Below, in pieces: positions 1-59,632 of a stretch of 59,632 bases of DNA. A program made the translations under genes and the position numbers. The DNA lies in assembly GCA_002104905.1 (NCBI GenBank), contig MCFE01000548.1:1-59632 (forward strand), given 5' to 3'. This DNA comes from Basidiobolus meristosporus CBS 931.73. Taxonomy: Eukaryota; Fungi; Basidiobolomycota. The notes beneath the pieces are model-generated. The model worked only from the letters and a program-made list of their open reading frames with translations. It ran no database searches and was not told where the DNA came from. Position 1 is the stretch's first letter; every line of letters begins with the position of its first letter.

Positions 1-1374
1 GCTTTCGCCAGCAAACGCATCATGAAAGGTGGATTCTACACTTTGCGACTTGGCCTTGTGAGAAGTCGGCTTGATGAGCGGTTCGGTTATAGTTTGGATC
101 TCAGCTTTATGAGTGACACCGCTTGATAACTTTGGTGCCGCTTGAGGTACATAATCATTCGACTTCTCTGGTATATGGATACTTGCTTCCTTGCTGTTCT
201 CAGGCTCTCGTTGACGCTTTTTGGTAGGCACTGGCTGAAGCTCAGGACTCACTCTGGGCTCATCCCTCTTTTCGATCGGTGAAGTATTAGTATAGTGGGG
301 AGCCACGCGAGAGTCAGAATTACTCTTTGAGTCCTGAGATTTCTCGTCTTGATTCGCCTTGGGCACTTTGATTTCGAATGGCTTTGATGCAACAGTGTGC
401 CTAACAAGCCTCTTGGGACGTGTTGGTTTGTGTTTAGGGATTGCTGAACCTTGATCAGCGCCTAAGGTTTGCTCCGCAGGTTCATGGGATAATCTAGTCT
501 TCGTCTCAATGTCGTTAGAGCTTGGCACTCTAATAGGCTCTTTAGCCCTGGAATGAGACGCTTCTCCGGATTTAACTGAAGACTTGCTTGACTTGGTGAA
601 ATCATTGGTCAGTGAGGATTTTTTGGTCTGTTGTTCAACCGCCAGCTTGCTGGTTATTGAGCTCTTCTTTGCCGCGGAACTGTCAAAAGTAAAGACGAAA
701 CTATCGTTCATGTCGGTGTCCTGTGTGATCCCGGTTTTCCCAATACCCATGGAGGTGTCATCTTCACTCTCTTCTTCGGATTTCACTCTTTTGGTGTACT
801 CGGATACTTTCTTTGCTTTTCCCAAACGTTGTGTATCGGATTTGGCGCGAGTGCTAGGAACCTCTTTTGTGTAGGAGATATTTGATAGAACCTTTTTGGT
901 GAAGGTTGAGGGGGCAAAAGTCAATTCATCAAGAAGATCGCTTCTATCTTGGTCCACTGAATCCTCAGCCTCGTCAACGGGAATGTCAGAATCTGACAAC
1001 TCCACGTCCGATATCTCCCTGCAATGAAAATAAATATTCAGACACGTGATAATATCGAGTATTGTGTATCACTTGTGATTACTCTTTTTGCTTTTCTAAA
1101 AACGCAGCACGTAAATCGGCAACTAGTTCGGCGTTCTAATATATTCAGGCAAAAGGTCAACTATTGAAACGAAGCAAGTCTACGCCTATGTACATACCTT
1201 CCTGGTCAAACCTTTAATATTGTGTTTCTGTAATAAAGATGATACCAAAGTTTAATAAAGGCCTGAAGGGAGAACTTGAAACTACATATGACAACTAACC
1301 CGACATAAGGCCTGGAGCTCAGAGCGCTTTAGCCTGTCTAAATCTCTTGGGCTTATCGAAGTGCGTTTGCGCAT
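1..1374 (-). CDS. Partial gene (runs off left edge): N-terminal SAP-like helical motif followed by a long S/K/E/D-rich low-complexity region
   Basis: Not in the ORF track. Spliced exons 1374-1300, 1227-1198, 1135-1083, 1018-<1 (three GT-AG introns, frame kept) give MRKRTSISPRDLDRLKRSELQALCRKHNIKGLTRKNAELVADLRAAFLEKQKEE...; last exon has no stop down to base 1. Confidence 0.75.
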
Positions 1375-1902
1375 CGTATTGGGAATATGAATATTCTTGA
1401 CTTGGATAAAGTTAGGATAGATACAGTGTCAAAGCAATAACCTGTTGCTTTTTAGAATGTGTGGATTTTTGGTAGGGGGTATGTCAAGTGAAATAGAGAG
1501 CCTCAACTAATGTATGTAAATCCAAATATTGAGTCTGGAAAATCAAACATAAAGCTGGACTACTGTAAACAAAAACAATAGGGTTCCTGCACTTTGCGAT
1601 TAAATCCTATATACACATTGACACCAAAAGCCAATCAAGGACCCCGTCCCCCTAGTTCCTTATGATGCGTGCTCAATTTATTCGCGGTTTCTATGCGACA
1701 ATTGCACCATTGATATCATGAGATTAAGTGCACTGCTATATTTAAGCCATGATGTCAGGTGGACAGGGATTTACGTGTTGTAGAGAAAAGCCACTATTAC
1801 CTCGAATTCTCAGTGGTCCAAAATTTCCATTAATGTTGGTTTTATGGCTACCAGAAGTCCAAGCTATTGATTAAATCTCTCTTCACTATCGTCACCGATA
1901 TA

Positions 1903-2604
1903 ATGAGTCTAAGTCCGAATGCCACTTCCCCGGAGCCTCGTCAAGAGACTTCGAGCGGTCACGGCTATCAGCCAATAAACAACCATCCCTATGTGGGTTC
2001 ATCTTACCAACAAGACTTTGACGCCCCTGAGATAGCGTCTCGAACCATGACAGAACGAATGGAAGAAGGCGGTGCGAATGTGAATCGTTTCGAGACATCT
2101 GTTAATCTTCGCATAGACATAGAAGCGGCCTTGACTTACGTGTTATTTTGCTTCAGTGGTCCGTAACCCTCTGGTACACGATTTGCATCTCGACTAATAC
2201 CCCTCTTTATATAACAGGGGTGATTTTCCTGATTGTGGAGCAAAAGAACGATTACGTACGCTTTCACGCCTGGCAATCTAGCTTCACGTTTGGTGTTTTC
2301 TTTGTTAGTGATAATTTTTCGGCCTCTGCACAAAGCACCACGCTAACCCGTTGGACCGATAGGTGGTTCAATTCGTAATAGGCTTTATCTCCACCGTCTT
2401 ATGGTGGATACTTTTGGTGCTAGAAATTGGACTTGCAGGCTTTTTGGCGTAAGAACCCACCCACTACTAAATATATATTCCCAATTACATTATGGACTAA
2501 GATTGTCTTTCAGGTACCGAGCCTATGTCGATAGTGCCACGCTTGAACGCTATTTATTGCCATTCTTTGGTGACCATGCATCCCAATGGGTTGATAACGA
2601 ATAA
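1903..2604 (+). CDS. Conserved fungal small membrane protein (UPF0132/DUF4870-like), multi-exon
   Basis: Segments FETSVNLRIDIEAALTYVL, GVIFLIVEQKNDYVRFHAWQSS and DSATLERYLLPFFGDHASQWVDNE* lie in successive ORF pieces; exact splice sites not all resolved. Confidence 0.75.
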
Positions 2605-4062
2605 TTTCATCGATTTTTTAAGATACGTTTGGTCCATCATCCATCCCAAACCTTTCAGCAATATTATTTGCGTTGAAATTTTCGCGAATTATGGAAATCA
2701 TAATATTAGGATTGGTGATCTATTTCGGTGAATTTATGCATGCAATTCTTGATAGAAAACCCAACCCAAAAAAACCCAGTAAATACCAGATAAACTATAT
2801 CCATGATATATTAGTAGCCAAATTTGCTTTCAATATCAGGGGTATCTTGTGCCGATGATTACAATAAGTCTCTGTACTTTCAAACAAAGTCAACGCGCGT
2901 GTTGATGTTTACTACAGAGAAACAGCTCACCACTATTTAGGTATACAACTGTACCAATAGATAATTAAGCTAAAAACTCTCCGATAGCGCCCTAACAACA
3001 AGCATACAGTAAATACAGATATCGCAAGAACATCATTGGGTTACTATACTAGGACACAAGTGTATCTTTAGATCTCTGCGAAGTCAGCGGCAACCGGTAA
3101 ACCCCGTACGAGAAAAGGCCAAGCGGTAGTCACAGAAACACGCACTTATCATTATGTCATTTTAAACATTAAGCTGGCTGCACTAAGGTCGAAAACCTCA
3201 AAGAAATAAATCCATCCGATATTCAAAATTACCTTCCAATGGGCACCACCGATCCTTATGAATCTAGAAGTATGTAATCTTTCCACGCCTTCCACGAAGA
3301 AACCGCATGTCCTCATCTTGGAACTGTTTGCTTTTATTTGGAACTATTCATGGGTGATGGAGTCGTAGGGTGACTAAATATAGGACATATATGTTAAATT
3401 CTACCAGGCGATTGAAAAAAGAAGATTAGTTGGTGATCCTAAATCAAGTTACTCTACTCCAATGCAACATAGAGTGTTCTTCATGTAAAGAGGATTCCTA
3501 AGGAAAGTGCCAGGGTACGTGTCTTAGAACACCACACGGTAACGAAATTGACGGATTTCTCACTTTCCATTTTAGGGAATTACAAGAATGAGCAGACATA
3601 TCGAATCGAGCCGATCTATTTTTAACCTGGTTATTCGTGGAAAGATACATAGGCAGTTCGGTGCAGTAACCAGAGCCATATATGTTTCAGGGAGAGCTGA
3701 ATAAGTTGCGATAAACTTTATTTGACAAGATGGATTTCCAAAATTCTTTACGAACCATGTTTTTATCATCGTGTTGGTGGACGCAACTTTTGTTATTAAT
3801 AAGAGGGCATGAAGTCGTTCATTGGTGGCAGTGGTGTTGTTTTCATTCAGCTCAATCTGGATAAAAGAATTAATCCCGTTTTTCTTTCTTGATATTTAAG
3901 ATCAAGGCTGGACTTGGATAGTTCACTTACTGAAGCTTCATTCATCTCTCGCCTGTTTCATAGTCCCCCTCACACTTCCTTTAGAGTATTCCCACACGGG
4001 AATAGCAAATTCCGCATTTCTTACTAATTTTCTTCATATAGTCTCCTTATTCTTTCACTAAC

Positions 4063-7000
4063 ATGGCTCAGGAATCTAATAGAGCCATACCCGCTTCCCC
4101 TCAGTCGAGTGGCAATGATAATAGCTTCGTTGAGTTGGAGCATCTCGAGCGCTCCAACCCACACAGCTACTTCACCAGGATGAACTCCCATAATTTTTAC
4201 AGACAACCAACCCAACCAAATCCTCAACCTACCAACGGCCCACCATCCCACACTTTTTCGGATTTCAGTGCTGATCTAACTGAGAGCGAAGCTGCTTACC
4301 CAACCCGGTACAATGTTGACTCCGAGAGTGACTCAACATACAGCGACAGCATCCATGGCCCAACTTCCCAACAAAGATCGCCTTACATGACGCCGGGCGT
4401 TGACATGAATAATCTGTTCGCATCGATGATGCAAGGCCATTTTGAAAATAGCCGCTATGCCAATTTTGCCACATCCACCGAATCCCTGGTTGCTTTGCTG
4501 GAAAACAAGAACGGTGCTAACAGCAGTACTTCTTCACGTAGCAACTCCTGGGTCTCCAACAGCTACCCCCCAGTGATGGACAATAATGGGCAGCCTCTTA
4601 GTCATATATCCAAGAAAGAAAATCCCTGGCCAACTTGGAAGGACAGCGAGGTTCCGATCACCAGGGTGGAGATTGCTGATATATTCGAGGATTTACAGAG
4701 GCGTTTCGGCTTTCAAAAGGACAATATGCGCAACATGTATGACGCGTTCATGACCATGCTTGACTCCAGAGCATCAAGAATGTCCACTTCCCAGGCCTTG
4801 GTTACCCTTCATGCCGATTATATCGGCGGGGAGAACGCCAATTATAAGAAGTGGTTCTTTTGCGCTCATCTTGACAAAGATGATCCCGAATACTTCCAAG
4901 CGAGAGGTGCCACCCGCAATAACCTCCCGACCGACAAAGATATTGAATCCCAGGATTCTCCCGAGACAGCCCAGTCACTTTGGTTCAACCGTATGGCTCA
5001 AATGTCGCCATACGATAGAGTTCGGCAGGTGGCCCTTTATCTCATGATTTGGGGTGAGGCATGTATCATTCGGTTTACTCCCGAGGTTCTTTGCTTTGTC
5101 TTCAAGCTTGCATGGGATTACTACACTAGCCCTGAATGTCAAGCTTCACTTGAGCCTGCAGTTGAGGGGGAATATCTGGAGAACGTTATTCGGCCACTGT
5201 ACAATTTCATCCGTGACCAGCAATATGAGGTTGCCGATGGAAAGTATGTGCGCAAGGAGAAAGACCACCATGAAATCATAGGATACGACGATGTGAACGA
5301 GCTGTTTTGGTCTCCTAAAGGGTTGGAGAGAATCATTTTGCAAGACCGTGCGACGAAGCTTATGGAATACCATCATTCCAAGAGATACCACAAGCTTGCC
5401 CAGGTTCATTGGGAGTCTGCTTTCCAGAAAACATATAAGGAACGGCGATCATGGCTTCATATCGCTCTCAACTTCTCTAGAATATGGATTCTCCATATTA
5501 TCGGGTTTTACTACTACACCGCAGCAAACGCAACCTATTTCTACACCTTGGAATCCGAGGCCTTTACCCCTCTACCCGCCCAACTCACTGTGTTGGGACT
5601 TGCTGGCGCGTTATCTTCTTTGATCATGATGTTTTGCACTTTCCTTGAATTCGCGTTCTTGCCCACTTCTTGGGTCAACTCGAACATTCTTATGAAGCGT
5701 TTGGTGTATCTTTTGGTAGGCGTGTGCATCAACATCGGCCCGGCAATATACGTTCTTGGCTTCGATCGTGACTCTCAGGTAGCTCTGATTGTTGCTAGCG
5801 TGCATCTCGCCGTCTCCGTTGTTACCTCGCTTGTGTTCATCTTTGTCCCAAGCGGCAAGCTGTTCAGACTTTTGAGCAAGAACACCACCGGCACATCGAA
5901 AAACCTTACCAATCGGACATTTACCAGCAATTTCCCTTCAATTCCTAAACGTGATCGCCTAGTATCGTTCGCTCTATGGATCTGCATTTTCTCATGCAAA
6001 TTCGCCGAAAGTTACTTTTTCCTGGCTCTTTCCTTCAAGGATTCTCTCGAGTCGACGTACAACGCTCGCAATCAATGCAGTGGTACTAACGTCACTGCTC
6101 TGTGCTACATCATGGTGTATGTAAGTATGATCCTTATGATATTGCTCGATCTGCTTCTATTCTTCCTGGATACCTACCTGTGGTATACCGTGTGGAGCAC
6201 TGCATTCAGTGTAGTACATTCATTCTATCTTGGTGATTCGTTCTGGTCCAGCTGGAGAAACGTTTTTGGTCGTATCTCAAGCCACATTTTCACTCAACTG
6301 CTAGCTACTAATGCTATGGATGTGAAGTATAAGCCCAAGATCCTGTGCTCGCAAATTTGGAATGCGTTTGTGATTTCGATGTATCGTGATCATCTGCTTT
6401 CACTTGATCACCTGCAAGCGCTTCTGTACCAACAGATACCTGGTGAGGAAGGCCGCCCATCACTACAAACACCAGCACTCTTGGACCCCAAGCTACCCCT
6501 GAACGACTGCTTCCCCAGTGGAAGTGAAGCTGAGCGTCGCATGACGTTTTTCGCTCAGAGTCTATCCATGCCCATGCCCAAGCCTGTTTCGGTGGATCGT
6601 ATGCCCACCTTCACAGTCTTCACCCCCCATTACGCAGAGAAAATCCTCCTGTCGCTTAGAGAGATTATTCGCGAAGACGATCAGTATACGCATGTCACCT
6701 TGTTGGAATATCTGAAGAAGCTTCACCCTCTTGAATGGGACAACTTTGTCAAGGATACCAAGATACTGGCCGATGAAAATGCCATGTTCCTAAACAACAG
6801 TGATCCACTGCTGTCGGAAGCATCCAAATCAGAAACCAAGGGCCCTACAGACGATCTACCATTCTACTGCATCGGGTTCAAGTCAGCCTCGCCCGAGTTC
6901 ACCCTGAGAACCAGAATCTGGGCCTCGCTCCGGTCTCAAACCCTGTATCGTACCATCTCCGGATTCATGAACTATTCGAAGGCGCTTAAACTTTTGTATC

Positions 7001-51282: not shown

Positions 51283-53179
51283 TGATACGCTTCTGGATTG
51301 ATGCCTTGTTCAATCACTATAATGCATTTGCCTGATAGCTATTTCCCCGGCACCAACATCCGCGCATAGAGGTTGTGCTTGAAGGTTATTTATCATATAA
51401 GTATATGCTACAAAGGAATGAAATTTTGTAAGTCATTCGGTGATAACTGCTAGAATGTGGTTGTTGCTAATTCAGTATTGCCAGTTTTAACACTGTCTAT
51501 TGAGCAGTGTTGGAAACAATGTTGGAATATGTTGTACATTATACTGGAAGGATAAATACCAAGTCTGATACTTGTTAGGCCACTATGGAAGCTTCTGATA
51601 AAACTTTTAAGGCATTGTTTAGCTATACTGAAGCAATGATGCCACAGAAATTACTAAGACTCTACAAAATTACACATTTGCTACCAATAACTATGCACAG
51701 CAGTGTGCAATATGTTGTCAGTGTTATAAGAGCTTTGAACTTACTGGGAGAAAAGTGGGCTACATGATTGTTGCTTAATGATTGACTAATTGTAAAAGTG
51801 GTATTTTTACTCTTACATGGTCTAGGCAGGGAAGCTATATAGAATATATCTTGGAAGGTCTCAAGAACAAATGTGCAAAGTTTGGGGCTGTTTGGACAAC
51901 TTCAAAATTTCCCATGTTCTGGGTACCTGATATTTAGGTGAGAAATAAATCAAGTCCCATCATGAAATTTAGGCAAGATTGTCCAAGATTTGTAGACTAT
52001 TTTTGATAGTTGAATTGTGGCCAAAATGGCCAGTAGGTTGGGGGAACTGAGTAGAATTTCTGGACAGTCACTGGCCATATTTACTAGACAAGTCTGACTA
52101 ATTAGCATTTCCAGAATTTTAGCCAATCAGAGCCTTCCCCTTGCCCAATGGTTGATAGGGTGTAGGTGTTATAGTCAGGACCAGAAAAGGTCAAACATGC
52201 AGGGTGCTTGGAGGATGCAATCCCCTACAATTCTCCCATACTATTCAAATCCCTTTGAATTACTTTTCTTTCATCATTGGTTTTGATCACAAGGGTTGCT
52301 ACTCCTCTACCTAAGCCTAAAAACTCTAACCACATATGCCTTACTCTGCATTTTGCATTTATGCATCATCATAAATAAATATATTTTGGCCCCTTATTTG
52401 CTTCCCTACTGTTGCATCCAAGAGAAAAGTGTAATAAAACTCTTGAATGAGTTAACTGAACCCAAGTGACAACTAAGTGCAGAATCTTAGAATTGTCAAG
52501 AGTGTCAGAAATATTAGCAGAGAGGTTCTGGTCTAATATTGGTCTTATATATAGCTGAGTTGGGCTATAAAGGTAACAGAGTAGGTTTGCTATGCAGGCT
52601 AGGCTTGGTGTTCTTGAGAGTGCTAGATATGCTAAGCTTGGGTAGAAACTAGAATTGATTTGTTGAATTCTTAATTTTGTTGAGACACACACTAAACCAA
52701 AAGGTTCAGTAAACTTTATTTATACTTTTCTGATTGAGTTGCATTGGTAAGCACCAAGAGACTGGACTAATTGAAATCTGATGGGGTGTTGATAGGTGCA
52801 TAAGATAAATGAATAATTGCCTCATTAATCAGCTGATATCTTGGCAACTGCTAAGTGGTTGGATAAATCTCAGATGACTAATCACTTGGAAAGGCTTAGC
52901 AGATCAGTTGAGGATGTAATGACCACATGAAAATTGATAAGGTGTGACAGCTAAATATAGATTCTGAGAAGTGATAAAATAAACCATAACAGGGATTAGT
53001 ATGTTTGGATTAGGGAAAATCATTTAGGGTACTAGATTTTCTAATGGTGTGAAATTGGCCAAGTTTTAAATGTTGATGCACAACACCAGCACTCTTTGTA
53101 TGAAATTACTAAGTGTTTATAATCAATTTGTTGCCAAAGTGTTATCTAAGATGCTATAGTTTATAAATGTTACTATTCA

Positions 53180-53513
53180 TTAGGGTTAGGTTTAGGGGGG
53201 AGACAGTCACCAACAGGTAAAATCTTTATTTCAGTTGAAATAAAGAAGCCAGCGCTACTGTTGTAGCTTTGATATAAGAGTGTGTAGCTGAGGGGAACTT
53301 GTAGGTAAGTTAATAAGAAGTGATGATAGTTCTTCAGTGCTCAAGACACTGTTCAGTGGGAAGGGGGGTAGCAAGAGAGGTAAGAATGACTTGTGAACAA
53401 CATTAATGAGGGAAAGTGATAAGGATTGATATTCATCATAAAGGGAGTGTGCTGCTGCAGATATTGCTGCCAAAGGTCTGTCAAGTACTTCAGGTAGGCC
53501 AGCTTGGGTTTTT
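53180..53513 (-). mobile_element. Unit A1: heavily 5'-truncated non-LTR retroelement, lineage A (3' end only)
   Basis: About 98% identical to 54917-55230; begins on + with TTAGGGTTAGGTTTAGGGGGG, then the shared hairpin module and the ORF2 C-terminus (...KLQQ*). Confidence 0.88.
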
Positions 53514-54593
53514 AGGGGAGGGAAAGTCACCAAGTTGGTGAAATCTTTATTTGAGTTAAGAACTAATCTAAGTACAAATAAAGAAGCCAATTAAGAGGTC
53601 TAGAACCTCTCTAATAAGTAATCTAATTTATGTTTTGTTTCATCTCTAATGTTTATTTCAATAAAGTAAAGCTCATCAGGGGTAAATATGAAATTCAAGG
53701 GATTTGGGGGAAGTACAAATTGTAGATGTTTCTGATCAATATAATCCAAGACTGGAACCCAGCCTGGAATTAGGTGTAGTAGGAAAGGTGTGTGGACTTG
53801 TAAGTAGCTCTGCCACATAGATCTTAGATGGTCCTGAGCCAGTAGTCTTGGTTTCTCAGCTTTTTGAAGTTTTGAAGCAAGCTCTGTTACTACAGCAGAG
53901 CCAATCAGGGTGTGCCAGCAAGAAGATTTCAGGGAGGAGTTAGATTTAAGCCATTGTTTGATGGAGGGGTTATGTGATTTCTGAAGTTTGACTAGGAAGG
54001 AAGCACAGAGATAGACCATTTGGATTTGGTATGGGTAGAACCCAAAGGCTCCATTAGTTGCATGGATATAGGGAGATACTGGAAGATAAGGTACCAAGGA
54101 TCTGATACACTGATGGAGAAATTTATCCAGGCAGTGAAGTTCTCTAGAGGTTAGGGGTATAATGTGGAGACCAAATTCAAGTACTGGCAGTATATACTGC
54201 TTCAGAAGTATAGGGATCTTTTGAATTGGAGTGTCTGGAGTGACTACTACCAGAAGCTTTTTGATAGCCTGTTGGGCAAGACGGATCCTATTATTCAGGT
54301 GGAGCTTTGAGTCAATCCCATGTTGACAAAATGGCAGACCTAGATATATTGCAGTTTGTTGTGGCAGAATGGTAGTGTTCTGTATAGTTGTAGTGCACCC
54401 AATTGGGACTGTCTTGGAAATTGAGAGTGAGAGGTTGTTGGCAGCCAAGTACTTCTCAATGATGGCAGTGTCTGCTATGGGATTAGGAGTAGCAATCTTG
54501 ATATCATCTGCATAGAGAGTAAGTAGTGGATAGGGAGAGTCTGGTGAGGGGCCTTTTGGAAATAAAGGAAAGTTGTGTAGGAATATCACAAAA
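53512..54593 (-). mobile_element. Unit B1: 5'-truncated non-LTR retroelement, lineage B
   Basis: About 98% identical to 58433-59513; RT C-terminal half with LYADD and YLGLPF; begins on + with TTAGGGGAGGG plus the module. Confidence 0.9.
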
Positions 54594-54666
54594 ATACTAG
54601 GGAAGTAGAAAATAAGGGAATGAGCACATCTGTCAGTGGGTGTCACTGTCACCCCACTACAGCACG

Positions 54667-54879
54667 GTAACCATACCCCAACAGGTTTTAAGGATACCCA
54701 CTTGCTACATTTACTAGTGTCTAGCGGAAGTTATCAATCATCAGCCATGTGGTAATAAAGTGCTTTTATTTTTCATCATGATAGTTTTACATGAGTCCTT
54801 AACACACTTTCATAGTGTGCAGTAACCACACCCCAACAGGTTTTAAGGATACCCACTTGCTACATTTACTTGTGTCTAG
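54667..54879. repeat. Two 58-bp direct repeats in the non-coding spacer between B1 and A2
   Basis: GTAACCAYACCCCAACAGGTTTTAAGGATACCCACTTGCTACATTTACTWGTGTCTAG at 54667-54724 and 54822-54879 (2 mismatches). Confidence 0.92.
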
Positions 54880-54902
54880 GGTGTAGGTGTTATAGTAAAG
54901 GC

Positions 54903-57389
54903 TAGGGTTAGGGGGGAGACAGTCACCAACAGGTGAAATCTTTATTTCAGTTGAAACAAAGAAGCCAGCGCTACTGTTGTAGCTTTGATACAAGAGTGTG
55001 TAGCTGAGGGGAATTTGTAGGTAAGTTAATAAGAAGTGATGATAGTTCTTCAGTGCTCAAGACACTGTTCAGTGGAAAGGGGGGTAGCAAGAGAGGTAAG
55101 AATGACTTGTGAACAACATTAATGAGGGGAATGTGATAAGGATTGATATTCATCATAAAGGGAGTGTGCTGCTGCAGATATTGCTGCCAAAGGTCTGTCA
55201 AGTACTTCAGGTAGGCCAGCTTGGGTTTTTCTGACTGCAGAATATAGTGTGCAAACTTCTTGACTTCAGGATCTCCAAGTATAGTTCTCCAGCAGGAGCC
55301 AGGTGTTGTGTGGTGTGTTCTCTTCCAGGCCTTTATCAGCGGGTTGTTGCAGTTGTGAAGTCTGAGGTATAATCTGGTTCTAAGGTAGAGAAGTCGTATC
55401 TTATAGTGCATAAACCCAAAAGCACCAAGAATAGCATGTCTGTAGGGGCATTCAGGCAAATGAGGCACCAAGGAGGTAATGCACCATACTGCAAACTTGT
55501 CAGCTTAGTGCAGTCTCTAGAAGTAAGAGAGAGAAGTGGTAAGCCAAATTCCAGGACAGGGAAGACAAACTGCTTGAGTAGAAGGAGGCAGCTGGGAGCT
55601 GAAGTTGTAGGAGGAGTAACAGCCAGTAGCTTGTGGAGTGCTTGTCTTGCCAGGATAATTCTCTTCTTCAGGTGTGCTCCAGAGTCTAGTCCAGTAGGAA
55701 GGAAAGGAAAGCCAAGATATGTAGCAGAAACCTGAGCAGGTAGAGTGGAGTTCTCCAAGCTGATGGGAGAGCCCAAAGGTACTGTCTTTGCAATGGAAAG
55801 CTGGAGATTATTCTTCTGCAGATACTGGTGGATGGCCTGGGAGTCTTGTTGCACATTGGAGGAGGATATTCTGATGTCATCAGGAAAGAGAGTAACCAGG
55901 CAGTCAGCTGAGAGTCTTGGGAGGTCATTCAGGAAGATGGCAAGCAGTATAGGACCAAGCACAGAGCCTTGAACCACTCCATTAGGAACTGAGAACACAG
56001 CTGATTGCTCACTTGGGTGAAGAATTCTTGCTTGTGGATCCAGAAACAGAGACCTGACAAGGAGGGTGAGAGATGTACTGGAGAAGCATTGCAACTTGGA
56101 CCAAAGCAGATTTCTGTCAACTGAATCAAAGGCCTTAGTAGTATCAAACAGAATAGAGGGATACTTGCACTGGAGAGAGTGATCTTGGCTAAGTATGACT
56201 GCATATTCCAAGGAGAGGCCAGGAACAAAGCCAAACTGCACAGGATGAAACTTGAGGGAGTCAGAGTAGAGCTCCTGAGCAAGCAGAAGCTCAAACACCT
56301 TTCTGCAGGTGGGCAGCAGAGATATTGGCCTGTAGGAGCTAGGATCCAGGTGCTTTCCTTTACCCTTGTACAGTGGCAGAACATTTGCAAAGGACCATTC
56401 TTCAGGAGTAGAAAGCTGGGCTGAGCATTGCTGAAACAGTGGAAGCAGAAGTGCAGACATGGCCTTGGTACTAGTCTTCAAAAGCTCATAGGAGATTGTG
56501 TCCACACCTGGAGCAGTAGAGTTGGGAAGCCTCTTGACCACATTATGGATTCTCCTTTGATCAAGTGCAAGTGGGATGGGCAGAGTCTTGAAGTCAGGAT
56601 GAAAGCCAGGAGTTGAGTACTGCTTTGTAGAGAAGAAGATGTTAGCCAGCTGTTCTGTTGAGGGTAACTTCCTGGAAGAGGGCCTCATTGCCCTGTAGAG
56701 TCTTGATACTGTTCTTGTTATAGAGTTGGAAGATTGCAGAGGCAAAGAACTCATAATATGATCCCAGAGCTGAGTATGCAGAGTGTGGTGAATTGCCTTG
56801 GAGTGGTGTATGGCTGTCAGGAGGAGTTTCTCTGTTTTTGGGTTAGGGAAACTCAGGTAGGTTTGTTGCAGGGCTGAAACAATGGATTCCCATTTTCTTG
56901 AGGTAACAGCAGTAGTCTTGCATGGCAGTGAGAGGGAGGCAGACACAAGAATCAGATGCTTCACAAAGAGCCATGCATAGTTGAGATCATCTGGCAGAGA
57001 AAGTAGCAAGCTGGCAAGCTTCAAGTAGTTCCCAAAGTCTTTCTTCTGATTCTTGGTAGCTTTGTGGGTGAGCACAGTACGTTTTGGCAGCTTCTTCTTC
57101 ACAACTGGTTGCATAGAAAGGGACCAGGCTGGGTGGTCAGAGGCTCTCAAGGATCCTAGCTCAGCTCCAGAGAATTGCTTAACTTCATTCACAAAGTAGA
57201 GGGCAGCAGCAGAAGGGCAGATCCAGTCAACACATCTTTTCTCAGATTGAGCACCTAGTGCTAGCAGATGGCTTTCTCTCAGGAAGTTCAGTAGGAATGT
57301 AGACCTTGGCTTCATTCTTGCAGTCAGAGTAGTCTTGTTCTCAGGATGGGGAATGTTGAGATCTCCAAGCAAGATAACAGGTGTTGATA
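54903..57389 (-). mobile_element. Unit A2: non-LTR (LINE-like) retroelement, lineage A, 5'-truncated inside the APE endonuclease
   Basis: APE remnants PVILLGDLN and SDH; RT motifs PGVDTISYELLK, YRPISLLPTCRKVFE, QFGF, FDTTKAFDSV, GVVQGSVLGP, FPDD, YLG; 3' end TAGGGTTAGGGGGG plus module. Confidence 0.93.
54971..57389 (-). pseudogene. A2 ORF2 (APE-RT), frameshifted near 55501
   Basis: ORFs 55336-57372 and 54971-55471 join into one frame (LDKFAVWCITSLVP, cf. lineage B LDKFLHQCIRSLVP) if one G is added at about 55501; could also be a sequencing error. Confidence 0.8.
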
Positions 57390-58417
57390 TAGGGTTAGGG
57401 GAGGGAAAGTCACCAAAGTAGGTGAAATCTTTATTTGATTTCAGACAAGTCTAACTACAAATAAAGAAGCCAGCTGGGAATAGAAGATTCCCAAGGTAAA
57501 CACTAAGTTGAATATGAATAAATCTAAGCTAAAGTTAAGGCAGTATCCCAGAGTACACTGGAGTTCAGGTTCATGGGGGAGTGAAGTAGATAAGCTTGAG
57601 AGATATAATAATCTTTTAAGAAGTGGGTAACAGCAGGCGAAGGGGAGTTATTGATAAGTGAAGTGAATCTTGAGAGCAGAGATTCCTCTAATGAGAAGGT
57701 CTTGTAAACTGGAGAATCAGGAAACTCTTTAAAGGCATGGTCAGTAGGTTCCCAGTAAAACTGGTCAGAGACATTTTGAGAGAACTCTTTGGCAATACTT
57801 TTGTCAAGTACTACCTCCAGAGTGTGATTGTTGATAAATCTCATGTTAACAATCTTGGATAAATTGTAACCTTGTTGCTTGAGATACATCCTATGCTCAG
57901 ATATAGGAATGAACTCAACATTGGCAAAGTAGCAGACAGCCCAGTCAGTAGCAGGAGGCAGATCAGAAGTAGAAGGAAACTTTCTTTTAGTCTTGGGAGG
58001 AGCAGCAGGATGTCTTGAGGAAGCAGGAACAGACTTTTTGACAGCTTCAGAGTAGGAAGAGTGAGCAGGAGCAGATAATTCTTGGGGAGTCTTGTTGGCA
58101 GGAAGAGTTGGCACAGGGACAATTGATTCTTGCAGATCAGAGAAGGCAGAAAACAGCTTGTGAACTTGCTTCTTGAGTAGAGCATTTTCAGCTTCAACAA
58201 GTGCAAGCCTTTCCTCCAGGAAAGAAATCTGAAGGGAATGGAGTGAAGGCATAAGAAATAAGAAGAAGAGGGTAGGATGGGGTGGGTGGGTGGGAAAATT
58301 AGCAGGAAGAAGAGAAGGAAGGAGCAAAAATTCCAGAAGTCAGAATTTATAGATGGATGGACAAGGGTAGATGGATGGATTATTCCTGGGTTAGGAAAAC
58401 TAGCAGGGAGAAGAGAA
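57390..58417 (-). mobile_element. Unit C: RT-less element with a single ORF1-like gene and the same telomeric 3' module
   Basis: Starts on + with TAGGGTTAGGGGAGGG plus the hairpin module; only about 130 nt between ORF stop and terminus; no ORF2. Confidence 0.8.
57524..58252 (-). CDS. Non-LTR ORF1-like (gag-equivalent) protein, 242 aa from the first ATG
   Basis: N-terminal coiled coil (FLEERLALVEAENALLKKQV), SYSEAVKK motif, P/K-rich linker, RRM-like beta-alpha-beta segment (VCYFANV...LKQQGYNLSKIVNMRFINNHTLEVVLD). Confidence 0.68.
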   Translation of the reverse strand: MPSLHSLQISFLEERLALVEAENALLKKQVHKLFSAFSDLQESIVPVPTLPANKTPQELSAPAHSSYSEAVKKSVPASSRHPAAPPKTKRKFPSTSDLPPATDWAVCYFANVEFIPISEHRMYLKQQGYNLSKIVNMRFINNHTLEVVLDKSIAKEFSQNVSDQFYWEPTDHAFKEFPDSPVYKTFSLEESLLSRFTSLINNSPSPAVTHFLKDYYISQAYLLHSPMNLNSSVLWDTALTLA

Positions 58418-58439
58418 GGGTTAGGGTTAGGGTTAGGGG
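58418..58439 (+). repeat. Telomeric-type (TTAGGG)3 tract at the C/B2 junction
   Basis: GGG TTAGGG TTAGGG TTAGGG G. Confidence 0.92.
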
Positions 58440-59632
58440 AGGGAAAGTCACCAAGTTGGTGAAATCTTTATTTGAGTTGAGAACTAATCTAAGTACAAAT
58501 AAAGAAGCCAATTAAGAGGTCTAGAACCTCTCTAATAAGTAATCTAATTTATGTTTTGTTTCATCTCTAATGTTTGTTTCAATAAAGTGAAGCTCATCAG
58601 AGGTAAATATAAAATTCAGGGGTTTTGGGGGAAGTACAAATTGTAGATGTTTCTGATCAATATAATCCAAGACTGGAACCCAGCCTGGAATTAGGTGTAG
58701 TAGGAAAGGTGTGTGGACTTGTAAGTAGCTCTGCCACATAGATCTTAGATGGTCCTGAGCCAGTAGTCTTGGTTTCTCAGCTTTTTGAAGTTTTGAAGCA
58801 AGCTCTGTTACTACAGCAGAGCCAACCAGGGTGTGCCAGCAAGAAGATTTCAGGGAGGAGTTAGATTGAAGCCATTGTTTGATGGAGGGGTTATGTGATT
58901 TCTGAAGTTTGACTAGGAAGGAAGCACGGAGATAGATCATTCGGATTTGGTATGGGTAGAACCCAAAAACTCCATTAGTTGCATGGATATAGGGAGATAC
59001 TGGAAGATAAGGTACCAAGGATCTGATACACTGATGGAGAAATTTATCCAGGCGGTGAAGTTCTCTGGAGGTTAGGGGTATAATGTGGAGACCAAATTCA
59101 AGTACCGGCAGTACATACTGCTTCAGAAGTATAGGGATCTTTTGAATTGGAGTGTCTGGAGTGACTACTACCAGAAGCTTTTTGAGAGCCTGTTGGGCAA
59201 GATGGATCCTATTATTCAGGTGGAGCTTTGAGTCAATCCCATGTTGACAAAACGGCAGACCTAGATATATTGCAGTTTGTTGTGGCAGAAAGCTAGTGTT
59301 CTGTATAGTTGTAGTGCACCCAATTGGGACTGTCTTGGAAATTGAGAGTGAGAGGTTGTTGGCAGCCAAGTACTTCTCAATGATGGCAGTGTCTGCTATG
59401 GGATTAGGAGTAGCAATCTTGATATCATCTGCATAGAGAGTTAGTAGTGGATAGGGAGAGTCTGGTGAGGGGCCTTTTGGAAATAAAGGAAAGTTGTGTA
59501 GGAATATCACAAATAGTAAGGGACCTAGTACAGATCCTTGGACTACTCCATTTGGAACCTCATAAGTCTCTGATGTACAACTTGGATGCAAAATTTTGGC
59601 TGAGTTCTCACAAAATAGAGAACGTACAAGAA
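58418..59632 (-). mobile_element. Unit B2: non-LTR retroelement, lineage B, continues beyond the window
   Basis: Frame open from the right edge (LVRSLFCENSAKILHP...GVVQGSVLGP...LYADD...YLG) to stop at 58521; same 3' module as B1. Confidence 0.92.

Follow-up and report, generated by a model that had tools for sequence, protein, structure and literature searches.

A telomere-dedicated family of APE-type non-LTR retrotransposons with ORF1-only and SINE partners in a fungal genome

We describe a telomere-dedicated family of APE-type non-LTR retrotransposons that, together with non-autonomous partners, coexists with normal telomeres in a fungal genome. The system comprises the LINE lineages A and B, both of which encode an RT, the lineages C and F, which have ORF1 only, and a SINE of ~0.53 kb (E). 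Its members form head-to-tail stacks at a contig end, and the same stacks lie under TTAGGG telomeres at other contig ends examined, which identifies a telomere-dedicated system existing beside normal telomeres. Telomere-specialised retrotransposons bear on the relation between telomerase and retroelements and on how chromosome ends survive the loss of their caps. Within a limited reach of the literature, no published account of such an APE-type telomere system in fungi was found.

The array at the right contig end

The stretch of DNA that was analysed (the window) comprises positions 1 to 59,632 of contig MCFE01000548.1. Positions 53180-59632, at the right contig end, are a single-polarity, head-to-tail array of 5'-truncated non-LTR elements, whose units open, on the + strand, with 1-3.5 copies of TTAGGG ahead of a conserved two-hairpin 3' module. 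The telomere motif TTAGGGTTAGGG, searched with at most one mismatch, has 7 + strand matches from 53180 to 58438, where 0.22 would be expected by chance in the whole window; the observed total was reached in 0 of 100 shuffles. A first-pass annotation had placed five units (A1, B1, A2, C and B2) on the minus strand, each beginning on + with a TTAGGG tract. These were recovered as described, with starts read directly at 53180 for A1 (TTAGGGTTAGGTTTAGGGGGGAGACAGTCACC), 53512 for B1 (tttTTAGGGGAGGGAAAGTCACC, one TTAGGG unit), 54902 for A2 (CTAGGGTTAGGGGGGAGACAGTCACC), 57389 for C (ATAGGGTTAGGGGAGGGAAAGTCACC) and 58418 for B2 (GGGTTAGGGTTAGGGTTAGGGGAGGGAAAGTCACC), and with coding capacity on the minus strand only. 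One correction concerns B1, whose homology to family B stops at 54596; a sixth repeat, D, occupies 54597-54899.

Unit A1 (53180-53513, minus strand) consists of the final 327 nt, at the 3' end, of LINE family A, with TTAGGGTTAGGTTTAGGG ahead of it on the + strand; it is 5'-truncated at its joint with the later B1, and the joint has TT as a 2-nt microhomology. B1 (53512-54596, minus strand) comprises the last 1087 nt, at the 3' end, of LINE family B and covers the C-terminal part of ORF2. Segment D (54597-54899, no strand assigned) belongs to a different repeat, has a 155-nt duplication inside it and lacks the two-hairpin 3' module; the degenerate telomere-like stretch at its end, TAGGGTGTAGGTGTTATAGTAAAGGCTAG, is found at other junctions too. 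A2 (54900-57388, minus strand) is the 3'-terminal 2.49 kb of family A, truncated at the point of C addition, with its 3' module at 54905-55006 and ORF2 from residue 117 to the stop, a portion that holds the C-terminal part of the APE domain, the linker and the RT. Unit C (57389-58417, minus strand) is a complete ORF1-only element of 1029 nt, with a 3' module at 57403-57495, an ORF at 57524-58255 (243 aa counted from Met) and a 5' UTR that is G-rich on the + strand. B2 (58418-59632, minus strand), the 3'-terminal 1.2 kb of family B, has 3.5 TTAGGG units ahead of it and its 3' module at 58441-58532. The contig end at 59632 falls within B2, so the window's own end is without a terminal telomere tract. 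Identity is 97-99% between A1 and A2 and 98% between B1 and B2; RVT_1 is present in A2 and B2, and homology to ORF1 and ORF2 was found by tblastn.

Position 53180 had also been given as the start of the array. It is the start of unit A1 but not the left limit of the TE-rich zone, which begins further left with a fragment of SINE family E (52007-52156, minus strand; element positions 255-403, 87% identical by blastn) and an unrelated repeat of 0.7 kb (52410-53094). The SINE fragment has the polarity of the array and is an older, decayed part of it. Element copies are absent from bases 1-52000 of the window. An Rfam scan of 52500-59632 at E values up to 1 gave no match, and so no hammerhead or HDV-like ribozyme, and a tRNA scan of 52000-59632 found none.

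Element proteins and the shared 3' RNA module

Full-length family A elements are ~4.6 kb and carry ORF1, with a coiled coil and an RRM-like domain, and ORF2, with an N-terminal APE-fold endonuclease followed by an RT. In the A and B lineages one UGA with CUN after it connects the two ORFs in frame, and this junction is conserved. The ORF2 products of A and B are 47% identical and match RVT_1 at 2e-25 and 5e-20, respectively. LINE RT relatives number in the thousands by HMMER, and the nearest named relatives outside are arthropod LINEs, with 31-36% identity in the RT core. The elements are APE-type non-LTR retrotransposons (LINEs); the earlier assignment of the RT to this type is borne out by the RVT_1 matches, the APE-fold model and the catalytic residues.

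The endonuclease domain is predicted to be a complete APE fold. The Pfam match to APE is weak (3e-4), and neither a single sequence nor a family profile of the region matched the PDB by sequence; an AF2 model of ORF2 residues 1-210 matched APE1, ExoA, L1-EN and TRAS1-EN at probability 1.0 in a fold search. The catalytic residues (N, Y93, D126, N128, H131, D171 and S200-D201-H202) are kept in every member whose sequence covers them, the first N being covered by part of the alignment. The sole exception is the first metal ligand, which is Asp rather than Glu family-wide. The lineages that conserve these residues are mutually only 43-75% identical.

Over its C-terminal 240 aa, ORF2 has no CCHC motif and no match to the restriction-enzyme-like (REL) endonuclease, the motif of which in the CRE clade runs CCHC...RHD...E...R/KPD. 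ORF1 has no CCHC knuckle and no gag match in Pfam. The C protein also has a coiled coil and an RRM-like domain; it is homologous to A ORF1 (E 6e-20) and 35% identical to its C-terminal half. Foldseek returned weak RRM-like rows alone (E ~0.06) for the ORF1-only protein, with a model that is poor outside residues 100-170. The ORFs of the elements are open and conserved.

Families A, B, C and F, SINE E and relatives in other samples have in common a 3' module made up of hairpin 1, UU, hairpin 2 (UCACC-loop-GGUGA) and a spacer of 6-9 nt, ending in a single-stranded C-run and then 0-3 UAACCC units. Compensatory changes occur in 3 of its 15 base pairs. The tail is the complement of the telomere repeat, and we infer from the DNA copies that the transcript ends in CCCUAA-type sequence. 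An AAUAAA stands ~30 nt upstream of this putative RNA 3' end, so element RNA could instead be cleaved and polyadenylated, which counts against a CCCUAA tail. This AAUAAA supplies one strand of the conserved hairpin 1 and so may not be a plain poly(A) signal, a reading that was dropped.

Junctions, age order and genome-wide distribution

Exact 3' junctions number ~1,180 across the genome, with a strand bias of roughly 9:1: 18-mers of the B/C-type junction occur 389 times forward and 43 reverse, and those of the A-type junction 690 and 58. The (TTAGGG)4 pattern is biased likewise (7604 forward, 81 reverse). Exact junction matches lay at the contig end in all 20 contigs sampled, ~0.4-6.4 kb from the end, on the plus strand at right ends and on the minus strand at left ends, and annotated fragments had one polarity in 93 cases and the opposite in 0. 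One junction match, on the minus strand, is internal (C136:42598). Enrichment at ends with uniform polarity, as proposed for a chromosome-end system, was thereby found, and a scatter of internal copies in both orientations between TSDs was not, there being no copy in bases 1-52000 of the window and no TSD at element junctions. Nor does the other condition that would have refuted the proposal, a locus far from a chromosome end, apply here.

Twelve of the 18 right ends sampled terminate in (TTAGGG)n, in tracts of 181-235 bp (~30-39 repeats) at 11 of them and of 50 bp at the twelfth. These caps indicate that the elements supplement telomerase-type telomeres without taking their place; with this limit, the chromosome-end interpretation first suggested is supported. 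The assembly appears to have very many telomere-bearing contig ends.

The telomeric sequence between copies is short. Of 68 junctions, 65 have 0-9 exact telomere bases before the G-run of the element and the other 3 have 19-20; when imperfect units are included, internal tracts are mostly of 1-2 repeats and none exceeds about five, with TTA and GGGTTA as the modal forms. Some junctions have no TTA at all, the element standing directly on internal sequence of an older element. At one locus (L028), a B copy is joined via TTA alone to a truncated, unrelated repeat (H). A reading of this flank as broken unique DNA was rejected, as it is repeat H; attachment without a telomere tract is still shown there. 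Junction microhomology measures 1-4 nt; of 36 junctions, 15 have at least 2 nt, where the null is 1/16 (p ~1e-9). Neither a TSD nor poly(A) was found at the 68 junctions, and no junction in the window has an LTR, in agreement with the initial description of the window.

Each of 35 A copies has its own 5' truncation point. Logan contigs, in independent sets from two runs, contain more than 150 distinct joints of truncated A, and their depth along A declines from 3' to 5'. Nested insertion into older copies was considered and rejected, since no older copy continues beyond its neighbour. When two copies of a family occur in one array, the distal copy is the nearer to the reference in 26 pairs versus 7 (p 7e-4), and by locus in 13 versus 3 (p 0.011); judged by this sequence comparison, distal copies are younger. 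The polarity (93 of 93) and this age order accord with the initial proposal that 3' ends point inward and that each copy sits on a truncated older one. The arrays also contain secondary TE insertions, namely H in A copies, with TSDs, and a copia element in L015, and at L013 a run of very short copies (A[2-122], A[1-125], A[8-1007]).

Mechanism, related systems and significance

The best overall explanation, which we consider probable, is a telomere-dedicated LINE system in which RNA tails prime on tract-less G-strand ends that are then recapped. The RT would bind the 3' module, and ORF1-only elements and the SINE would be copied in trans. The target would be a chromosome end that had lost its telomere tract entirely or nearly so; 1-4 nt of the CCCUAA tail would pair with the G-rich strand at its 3' end, reverse transcription would lengthen that strand outward, and frequent early halts of synthesis would produce 5' truncation. 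The new end would be capped with ~200 bp of TTAGGG, presumably by telomerase, and TTAGGG-like and G-rich motifs near element 5' ends may aid this capping. Later loss of the tract would allow the next element to land, and repeated loss and landing would make arrays grow outward, with the oldest copies inside and the youngest outside. Attachment to ends with little or no tract is proposed because long tracts would be expected between elements if priming took place on a normal G-overhang, and the internal tracts are short.

Since the APE domain is retained, the 3' OH may come from a nick, within the repeat tract or at its base, rather than from a free end. Conservation of the APE catalytic residues across such divergent lineages argues that the endonuclease is in use, for which a purely free-end mechanism would have no need, and both microhomology and outward age order are also expected from endonuclease-dependent insertion into the terminal tract. 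SINE E copies are mostly full length (11 of 15), so truncation is more likely to reflect incomplete reverse transcription than erosion, which weakens the part of the mechanism that invokes an eroded end.

A TRAS/SART-type entry, in which the APE nicks the G-strand in duplex TTAGGG and the resulting 3' end pairs with the CCCUAA tail to give integration in fixed orientation, is a live rival, though it seems to us rather unlikely. It predicts fixed polarity relative to the repeat and location beside the terminus, it would employ the complete APE fold with catalytic residues kept across divergent lineages where covered, and 5'-junction microhomology is normal in LINE integration. SART1 can work with a target of as few as three repeats, and its insertion is at a defined repeat (PMC7265360). 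However, random nicking in a tract of ~30-39 repeats should give a broad spread of tract lengths, whereas 65 of the 68 junctions hold no more than nine exact telomere bases and no internal tract exceeds about five repeats, and several junctions, with no telomere unit or TTA alone, lie on arbitrary internal sequence. Poly(A) is absent, and the copies are mostly 5'-truncated, whereas TRAS/SART are reported to be full length at telomeres (PMC4700185).

Much of each array could also stem from one event if the RT switched from one RNA to the 3' tail of another, leaving head-to-tail concatemers with RNA-templated repeats between. Such template jumping, which we regard as quite improbable, would account for the uniformly short inter-element tracts with their two modes, the very short copies in series at L013 and the microhomology, yet ages differ within arrays, identity rising outward, and secondary TEs have inserted there. 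Arrays therefore accumulate over time, and template jumping explains some adjacent pairs only. Very improbable, in our judgement, is spread mainly by subtelomeric recombination or duplication between ends, or inflation by repeat assembly, with little ongoing retrotransposition. Identities of 97-99% between copies, a C truncated at 209 and followed by the terminal tract in two contigs, 1.7 kb of proximal sequence in common to L021 and L031 (98% identical) and near-identical telomere coordinates in C21 and C22 are what it would produce; against it stand the 35 truncation points among 35 A copies, the more than 150 different joints in independent contig sets, the open and conserved ORFs and the presence of related arrays in other samples.

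Priming on denuded ends, the reading that we favour, resembles what is said of the endonuclease-deficient Athena/Coprina PLEs of rotifers, fungi and others, whose RNA carries short telomeric repeats in reverse complement at its 3' end and which are said to attach to exposed G-rich telomeric ends and occur at termini only (PMC8557442). The present family has such repeats at its 3' end and a terminal location, but unlike those PLEs, whose RT is without an EN, it has a LINE-type RVT_1, an N-terminal APE and a LINE ORF1, no hammerhead ribozyme or other Rfam family beside the repeats, and ORF1-only and SINE partners. With HeT-A/TART/TAHRE of Drosophila it has in common head-to-tail arrays in which 5' ends face outward and 5' truncation varies, and also a split of labour between RT-encoding and ORF1/gag-only elements; it differs in that (TTAGGG)n caps the arrays and is not replaced as the terminus, in having telomere-repeat units rather than oligo(A) at junctions, and in an ORF1 without CCHC knuckles.

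TRAS/SART of Bombyx and Tribolium (R1 clade) are likewise APE-type LINEs specific for telomeric repeats in fixed orientation, require their 3' UTR (a need that we infer here) and coexist with telomerase-type repeats, and the TRAS1 EN structure is among the APE fold matches. Their copies carry a poly(A) tail, are reported to be full length at telomeres and lie inside repeat tracts (PMC4700185); in the present family poly(A) is absent, truncated copies predominate, 0-4 repeat units separate copies, ORF1 is without CCHC knuckles, and an in-frame UGA joins ORF1 to ORF2. MoTeR (Magnaporthe), FoTeR (Fusarium) and Cnl1 (Cryptococcus) are also fungal non-LTR elements that form arrays with truncated copies in or beside telomere repeats (PMC12857005). 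They belong to the CRE clade with a C-terminal restriction-enzyme-like endonuclease, in contrast to the N-terminal APE and absent REL motif here, and the present host is apparently not a member of Dikarya. L1 insertion without endonuclease at dysfunctional telomeres is described from mutant cultured cells (Morrish et al. 2007, as cited in PMC4700185), and the priming of a LINE RT on an uncapped chromosome end proposed here would be similar. Unlike those opportunistic events, it would be the usual and specialised way of life of the elements, served by a dedicated 3' tail complementary to the telomere.

We make no claim that the host depends on the elements, and telomerase is not replaced. A further, tentative reading, possible though short of probable, makes the elements the chromosome-end repair partner of telomerase: module and tail would act like a telomerase-RNA template with its boundary helix, the LINE RT would extend denuded G-strand ends without endonuclease cutting, and the 5' TTAGGG-like motifs of LINE, ORF1-only element and SINE would seed capping by telomerase.

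Known systems each display one feature of this family: TRAS/SART an APE, with poly(A); Athena/Coprina a telomere-complement tail, with no endonuclease; HeT-A/TART the division of labour between gag-only and RT elements, without telomerase; and MoTeR/FoTeR/Cnl1 a fungal host, with a restriction-like endonuclease. Here a LINE with an intact APE is combined with a tail complementary to the telomere, with ORF1-only and SINE partners and with normal TTAGGG caps, and one genome offers more than 1000 datable junctions. Whether a LINE RT primes on free chromosome ends, and whether the host benefits, can now be tested in a culturable fungus. If the repair-partner reading is true, LINEs would have converged on the labour split of HeT-A/TART and the annealing of Athena in a telomerase-positive, early-diverging fungus.

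A polar array of TTAGGG-started units

Seven + strand matches to TTAGGGTTAGGG (at most one mismatch) lie within 53180-58438, against a chance expectation of 0.22 across the whole window, and a short TTAGGG stretch can be read directly into a G-run at five places. These are the starts of A1 (53180-53513), B1 (53512-54596), A2 (54900-57388), C (57389-58417) and B2 (58418-59632), where A and B are RT-encoding LINE families and C is an ORF1-only element. TTAGGG is followed in family A by G(3-6)AGACAGTCACCAACAGGTGAAATCTTTATTT, and in B and C by the near-identical motif GGGGAGGGAAAGTCACCAA..GGTGAAATCTTTATTT. The pairs A1/A2 and B1/B2 are 97-99% identical. All protein-coding potential of the array units resides on the minus strand, and no poly(A), LTR or target-site duplication was found at any unit boundary in the window. 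The polar array proposed in the first-pass annotation is thus real, judged by its seven motif matches and five unit starts, and its accompanying claims of minus-strand units and of boundaries free of poly(A), LTRs and target-site duplications are borne out.

The extent of the array needed revision. The five starts stand, and positions 54597-54899 belong to a sixth, different repeat (D) that is without the 3' module shared by the other units. Likewise, the TE-rich zone does not start at 53180; it begins further left, with a decayed SINE fragment of the same polarity as the array (52007-52156) and an unrelated 0.7-kb repeat, H (52410-53094). Within bases 1-52000 of the window, no element copy was found at the DNA or protein level. 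An FKS1-type glucan synthase is encoded in the window, which marks the host as fungal. The window spans the entire contig and breaks off inside B2, and it therefore ends without a terminal telomere tract.

Repeat D contains 155-nt internal tandem units (window 54597-54899; L021:1719-1770; L031 reverse, ~2411-3599; L numbers denote the other contig ends and loci compared). Its end is a degenerate telomere-like string, TAGGGTGTAGGTGTTATAGTAAGGGCTAG, which recurs just before A-type 3' ends on other contigs and at read joints. D may represent an additional element family that lacks the two-hairpin module, or else a remnant of variant repeats. H, at ~0.7 kb, also occurs at L030:3609-4305, L013:2626-3322, L024:7787-8483 and twice in L019. 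It sits within A copies in either orientation, with ~10-13 bp of flanking A sequence duplicated, and is a separate transposable element colonising the arrays. LTR retrotransposons are found in or beside arrays as well (L015:4976-10000; L025:1-1686): a copia-type element has split an A copy, and an ORF of the Ty3 gag-protease type adjoins an array.

Element families and their shared 3' module

Full-length A is ~4.6 kb, and longer family A copies elsewhere in the genome yield a 922-aa ORF2 (L025:4928-7693, minus strand) with RVT_1 at residues 466-678 (2e-25) and weak similarity to the APE profile, in the profile's C-terminal half. In an alignment with relatives, the catalytic Asn, Tyr93, Asp126/Asn128, His131, Asp171 and Ser200-Asp201-His202 are kept, and Asp stands in place of the first metal-binding Glu across the whole family. 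An AlphaFold model of ORF2 residues 1-210 (pLDDT mostly >80) matched APE1, ExoA, L1-EN and TRAS1-EN with probability 1.0 and E 5e-9 to 4e-8. Given the RVT_1 match, the catalytic-residue alignment and the structure-model matches, the earlier assignment to the APE-LINE type holds and the predicted A endonuclease looks intact. ORF2 of B is 47% identical to that of A.

ORF1 lies directly upstream of ORF2 in the same frame, and the two are separated by one UGA codon with CUA, CUU or CUC after it (L025:7685-7705, minus strand; also L004, L005, L007, L009, L014 and L028). This UGA-CUN junction is kept in both A and B as well as in relatives from other samples (L032:2112-2117, L033:2669-2674, L039:1449-1454), and family A ORF2 lacks a separate ATG ahead of the first APE strand. 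From its sequence, the arrangement looks like programmed stop-codon readthrough giving an ORF1-ORF2 fusion, which would be unusual among LINEs.

C is a complete element of 1029 nt. It encodes a protein of 243 aa with homology to A ORF1 over the latter's C-terminal half (35% identity, E 6e-20). The predicted fold comprises an N-terminal coiled coil and a beta-alpha-beta-beta-alpha-beta domain, for which a structure search returned weak, RRM-like matches. F is a second ORF1-only lineage with 42% identity to C, and E is a non-coding SINE of ~530 nt with a constant 5' end.

In the RNA sense, all families share a common order of parts at the 3' end: hairpin 1 (UCUUUAUUUx...x'AAAUAAAGA), UU, hairpin 2 (UCACC-loop-GGUGA), a pyrimidine-rich spacer of 6-9 nt, and a single-stranded C-run followed by 0-3 UAACCC units. 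RNAalifold recovered both hairpins across 11 lineages, with 3 of 15 pairs staying paired despite two-sided changes. If a single RT mobilised these elements in trans, a module common to otherwise unrelated or non-coding elements would be expected. Between hairpin 2 and the C-run, the spacer sequence is CUGUCU or UUGUCA (window 54905-54940, RNA sense; L033:5490-5519). In ciliate telomerase RNAs, the template boundary is set by a (CU)GUCA motif lying immediately upstream of the template; the likeness is probably a coincidence.

TTAGGG-like or G-rich motifs also occur on the G-strand near the 5' ends of all families, including AAAATTAGGGTTAGGGTTG and (TTAGGG)2 in the A 5' UTR (L014:3990-4010), GGGTTAGGGATAACC and GGGTTAGGG in the SINE head (L013:1885-1900), and GGGGTGGGTGGGTGGG and GGGTTAGG in C (window 58270-58295 and 58390-58400). 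Speculatively, these could seed re-capping.

Chromosome-end location, outward growth and attachment

Exact matches were counted genome-wide for the A-type 3' junction 18-mer (690 forward, 58 reverse), the B/C-type 3' junction 18-mer (389 forward, 43 reverse) and (TTAGGG)4 (7604 forward, 81 reverse). Because junctions and telomere repeats share the same strand bias, the elements are co-oriented with the G-strand. The ~10-90-fold excess of both on the + over the minus strand of contigs also means that the telomere stands at the right end of nearly every telomere-bearing contig as written, which probably reflects assembler convention rather than biology. In the first 20 contigs in file order with A-type matches, + hits lay 0.4-6.4 kb from the right end, or minus hits near the left end, without exception (20/20). 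Among G-strand-oriented loci, 93 annotated A, B, C, E and F fragments had one polarity and 0 the opposite. Copies in the sampled contigs thus occupy the ends with uniform polarity, as the first-pass annotation anticipated. Of 18 right ends sampled, 12 finish to the last base in a TTAGGG tract (181-235 bp in 11, 50 bp in one); these tracts adjoin a truncated copy of A, C or E without a gap, sharing 2-4 nt of microhomology with it. One clearly internal A-type junction (C136:42598 of the source assembly, minus strand) was seen among ~200 listed hits. It lies >42 kb from a contig end, has a polarity opposite to that of the array at the contig's other end, and may reflect insertion at an internal site, an old fusion or a misjoin.

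Two further observations concern individual ends. A subtelomeric gene with an SNF2-related helicase domain occurs at one contig end, and at another end a copy 98% identical to it breaks off midway and runs directly into telomere-like sequence and an A element (L021:1-1722 against L031 reverse, 5192-6914), which looks like a healed terminal deletion. C is cut at position 209 and followed at once by the terminal tract at both L016:8567-8774 and L018:7189-7395, and at 204 at a third contig end (L017:6710-6906). The shared cut reflects either a preferred telomere-addition site (...AAGC/TT) or duplication between ends.

Across 68 measured junctions, exact telomere-pattern bases ahead of the element G-run numbered 0-9 in 65 and 19-20 in 3, with modes at 3 (just TTA) and 7 (GGGTTA). 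At some there were none, and the G-run directly borders an internal part of the older copy. Internal tracts thus reach at most ~5 units counting imperfect ones (mostly 1-2), against ~30-39 at the majority of termini. In cases where a reference allowed the older copy to be traced, its last bases overlap the telomere pattern by 1-4 nt in most cases, and by at least 2 nt at 15 of 36 junctions (chance 1/16; p about 1e-9). The older copy never resumes beyond its neighbour, and nested insertion was therefore rejected. The distal of two same-family copies was nearer the reference in 26 of 33 pairs (p 7e-4) and at 13 of 16 loci (p 0.011), so arrays grew outward over time. The 35 A copies have 35 different 5' end positions, ranging from 75 to 3982, and Logan contigs from two runs of the source sample contain >150 different truncated-A joints to element 3' starts, with depth along A falling from ~1.07 million at the 3' end to 0.36 million at the 5' end. 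Of 15 copies each, 11 are full length for the SINE and only 2 for C; that the SINE is mostly complete suggests that LINE truncation is largely due to incomplete reverse transcription and not to erosion.

Polarity, terminal location, short junction tracts, microhomology, age order and the shared 3' module are established, together with an intact RT and, as modelled, an intact APE fold. On this footing, the CCCUAA tail of the RNA would pair with the 3' end of the G-strand, and the RT would extend the end. The end would be nearly stripped of telomere repeats at the time of attachment, because a tract still in place would have left ~200 bp of repeats enclosed between copies, and internal tracts are short. 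Telomerase-type capping would follow, since terminal tracts are present. Least certain in this scheme is what the conserved endonuclease does. A nick by it within telomere repeats, as in TRAS/SART, would yield identical polarity and age order; we rate it lower because it fits poorly with the contrast between internal and terminal tract lengths, with repeat-free junctions and with truncated copies. TART, too, keeps an APE domain. Template jumping may account for part of the series of very short copies.

Relatives and known telomeric retrotransposons

Relatives were sought among 1.84 billion cluster representatives by a word-index search and a full HMMER scan, which agreed. The family itself accounts for only ~5 clusters (49-95% identity), all on short metagenome or Logan contigs. 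Beyond them scores fall steeply, to matches confined to the RT at 27-40% identity; the few of these with names that were looked up were arthropod proteins. Contigs of close relatives share the ORF1-UGA-ORF2 layout and the 3' module, which again ends in CCCCCTAACCC(TAA); another truncated element with its own module comes directly after. The lifestyle is therefore common to related organisms and older than the young copies in this genome.

A 2023 survey of telomeric retrotransposons lists SART/TRAS, GilM/GilT, Zepp, MoTeR, Tx1-1_ACar, Athena and HeT-A/TART/TAHRE (PMC10088271), to which a 2025 paper added FoTeR; MoTeR, FoTeR and Cnl1 are assigned there to the CRE clade and carry a restriction-like endonuclease at the C terminus (PMC12857005). 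Athena and Coprina are PLEs that lack an endonuclease and use reverse-complement telomeric repeats together with hammerhead motifs (PMC8557442). The present family is not of the CRE clade. It is nearest in its working to Athena, by tail annealing, and to HeT-A/TART, by polar arrays and a gag-only partner, yet is a member of neither. Like TRAS/SART it is of the APE type, but it does not show the poly(A) tail or the full-length, in-tract copies of those elements. In the literature searched, the coverage of which was incomplete, no account of a family like this one from early-diverging fungi was found. The elements form a real, genome-wide and telomere-dedicated APE-LINE consortium that coexists with canonical telomeres.
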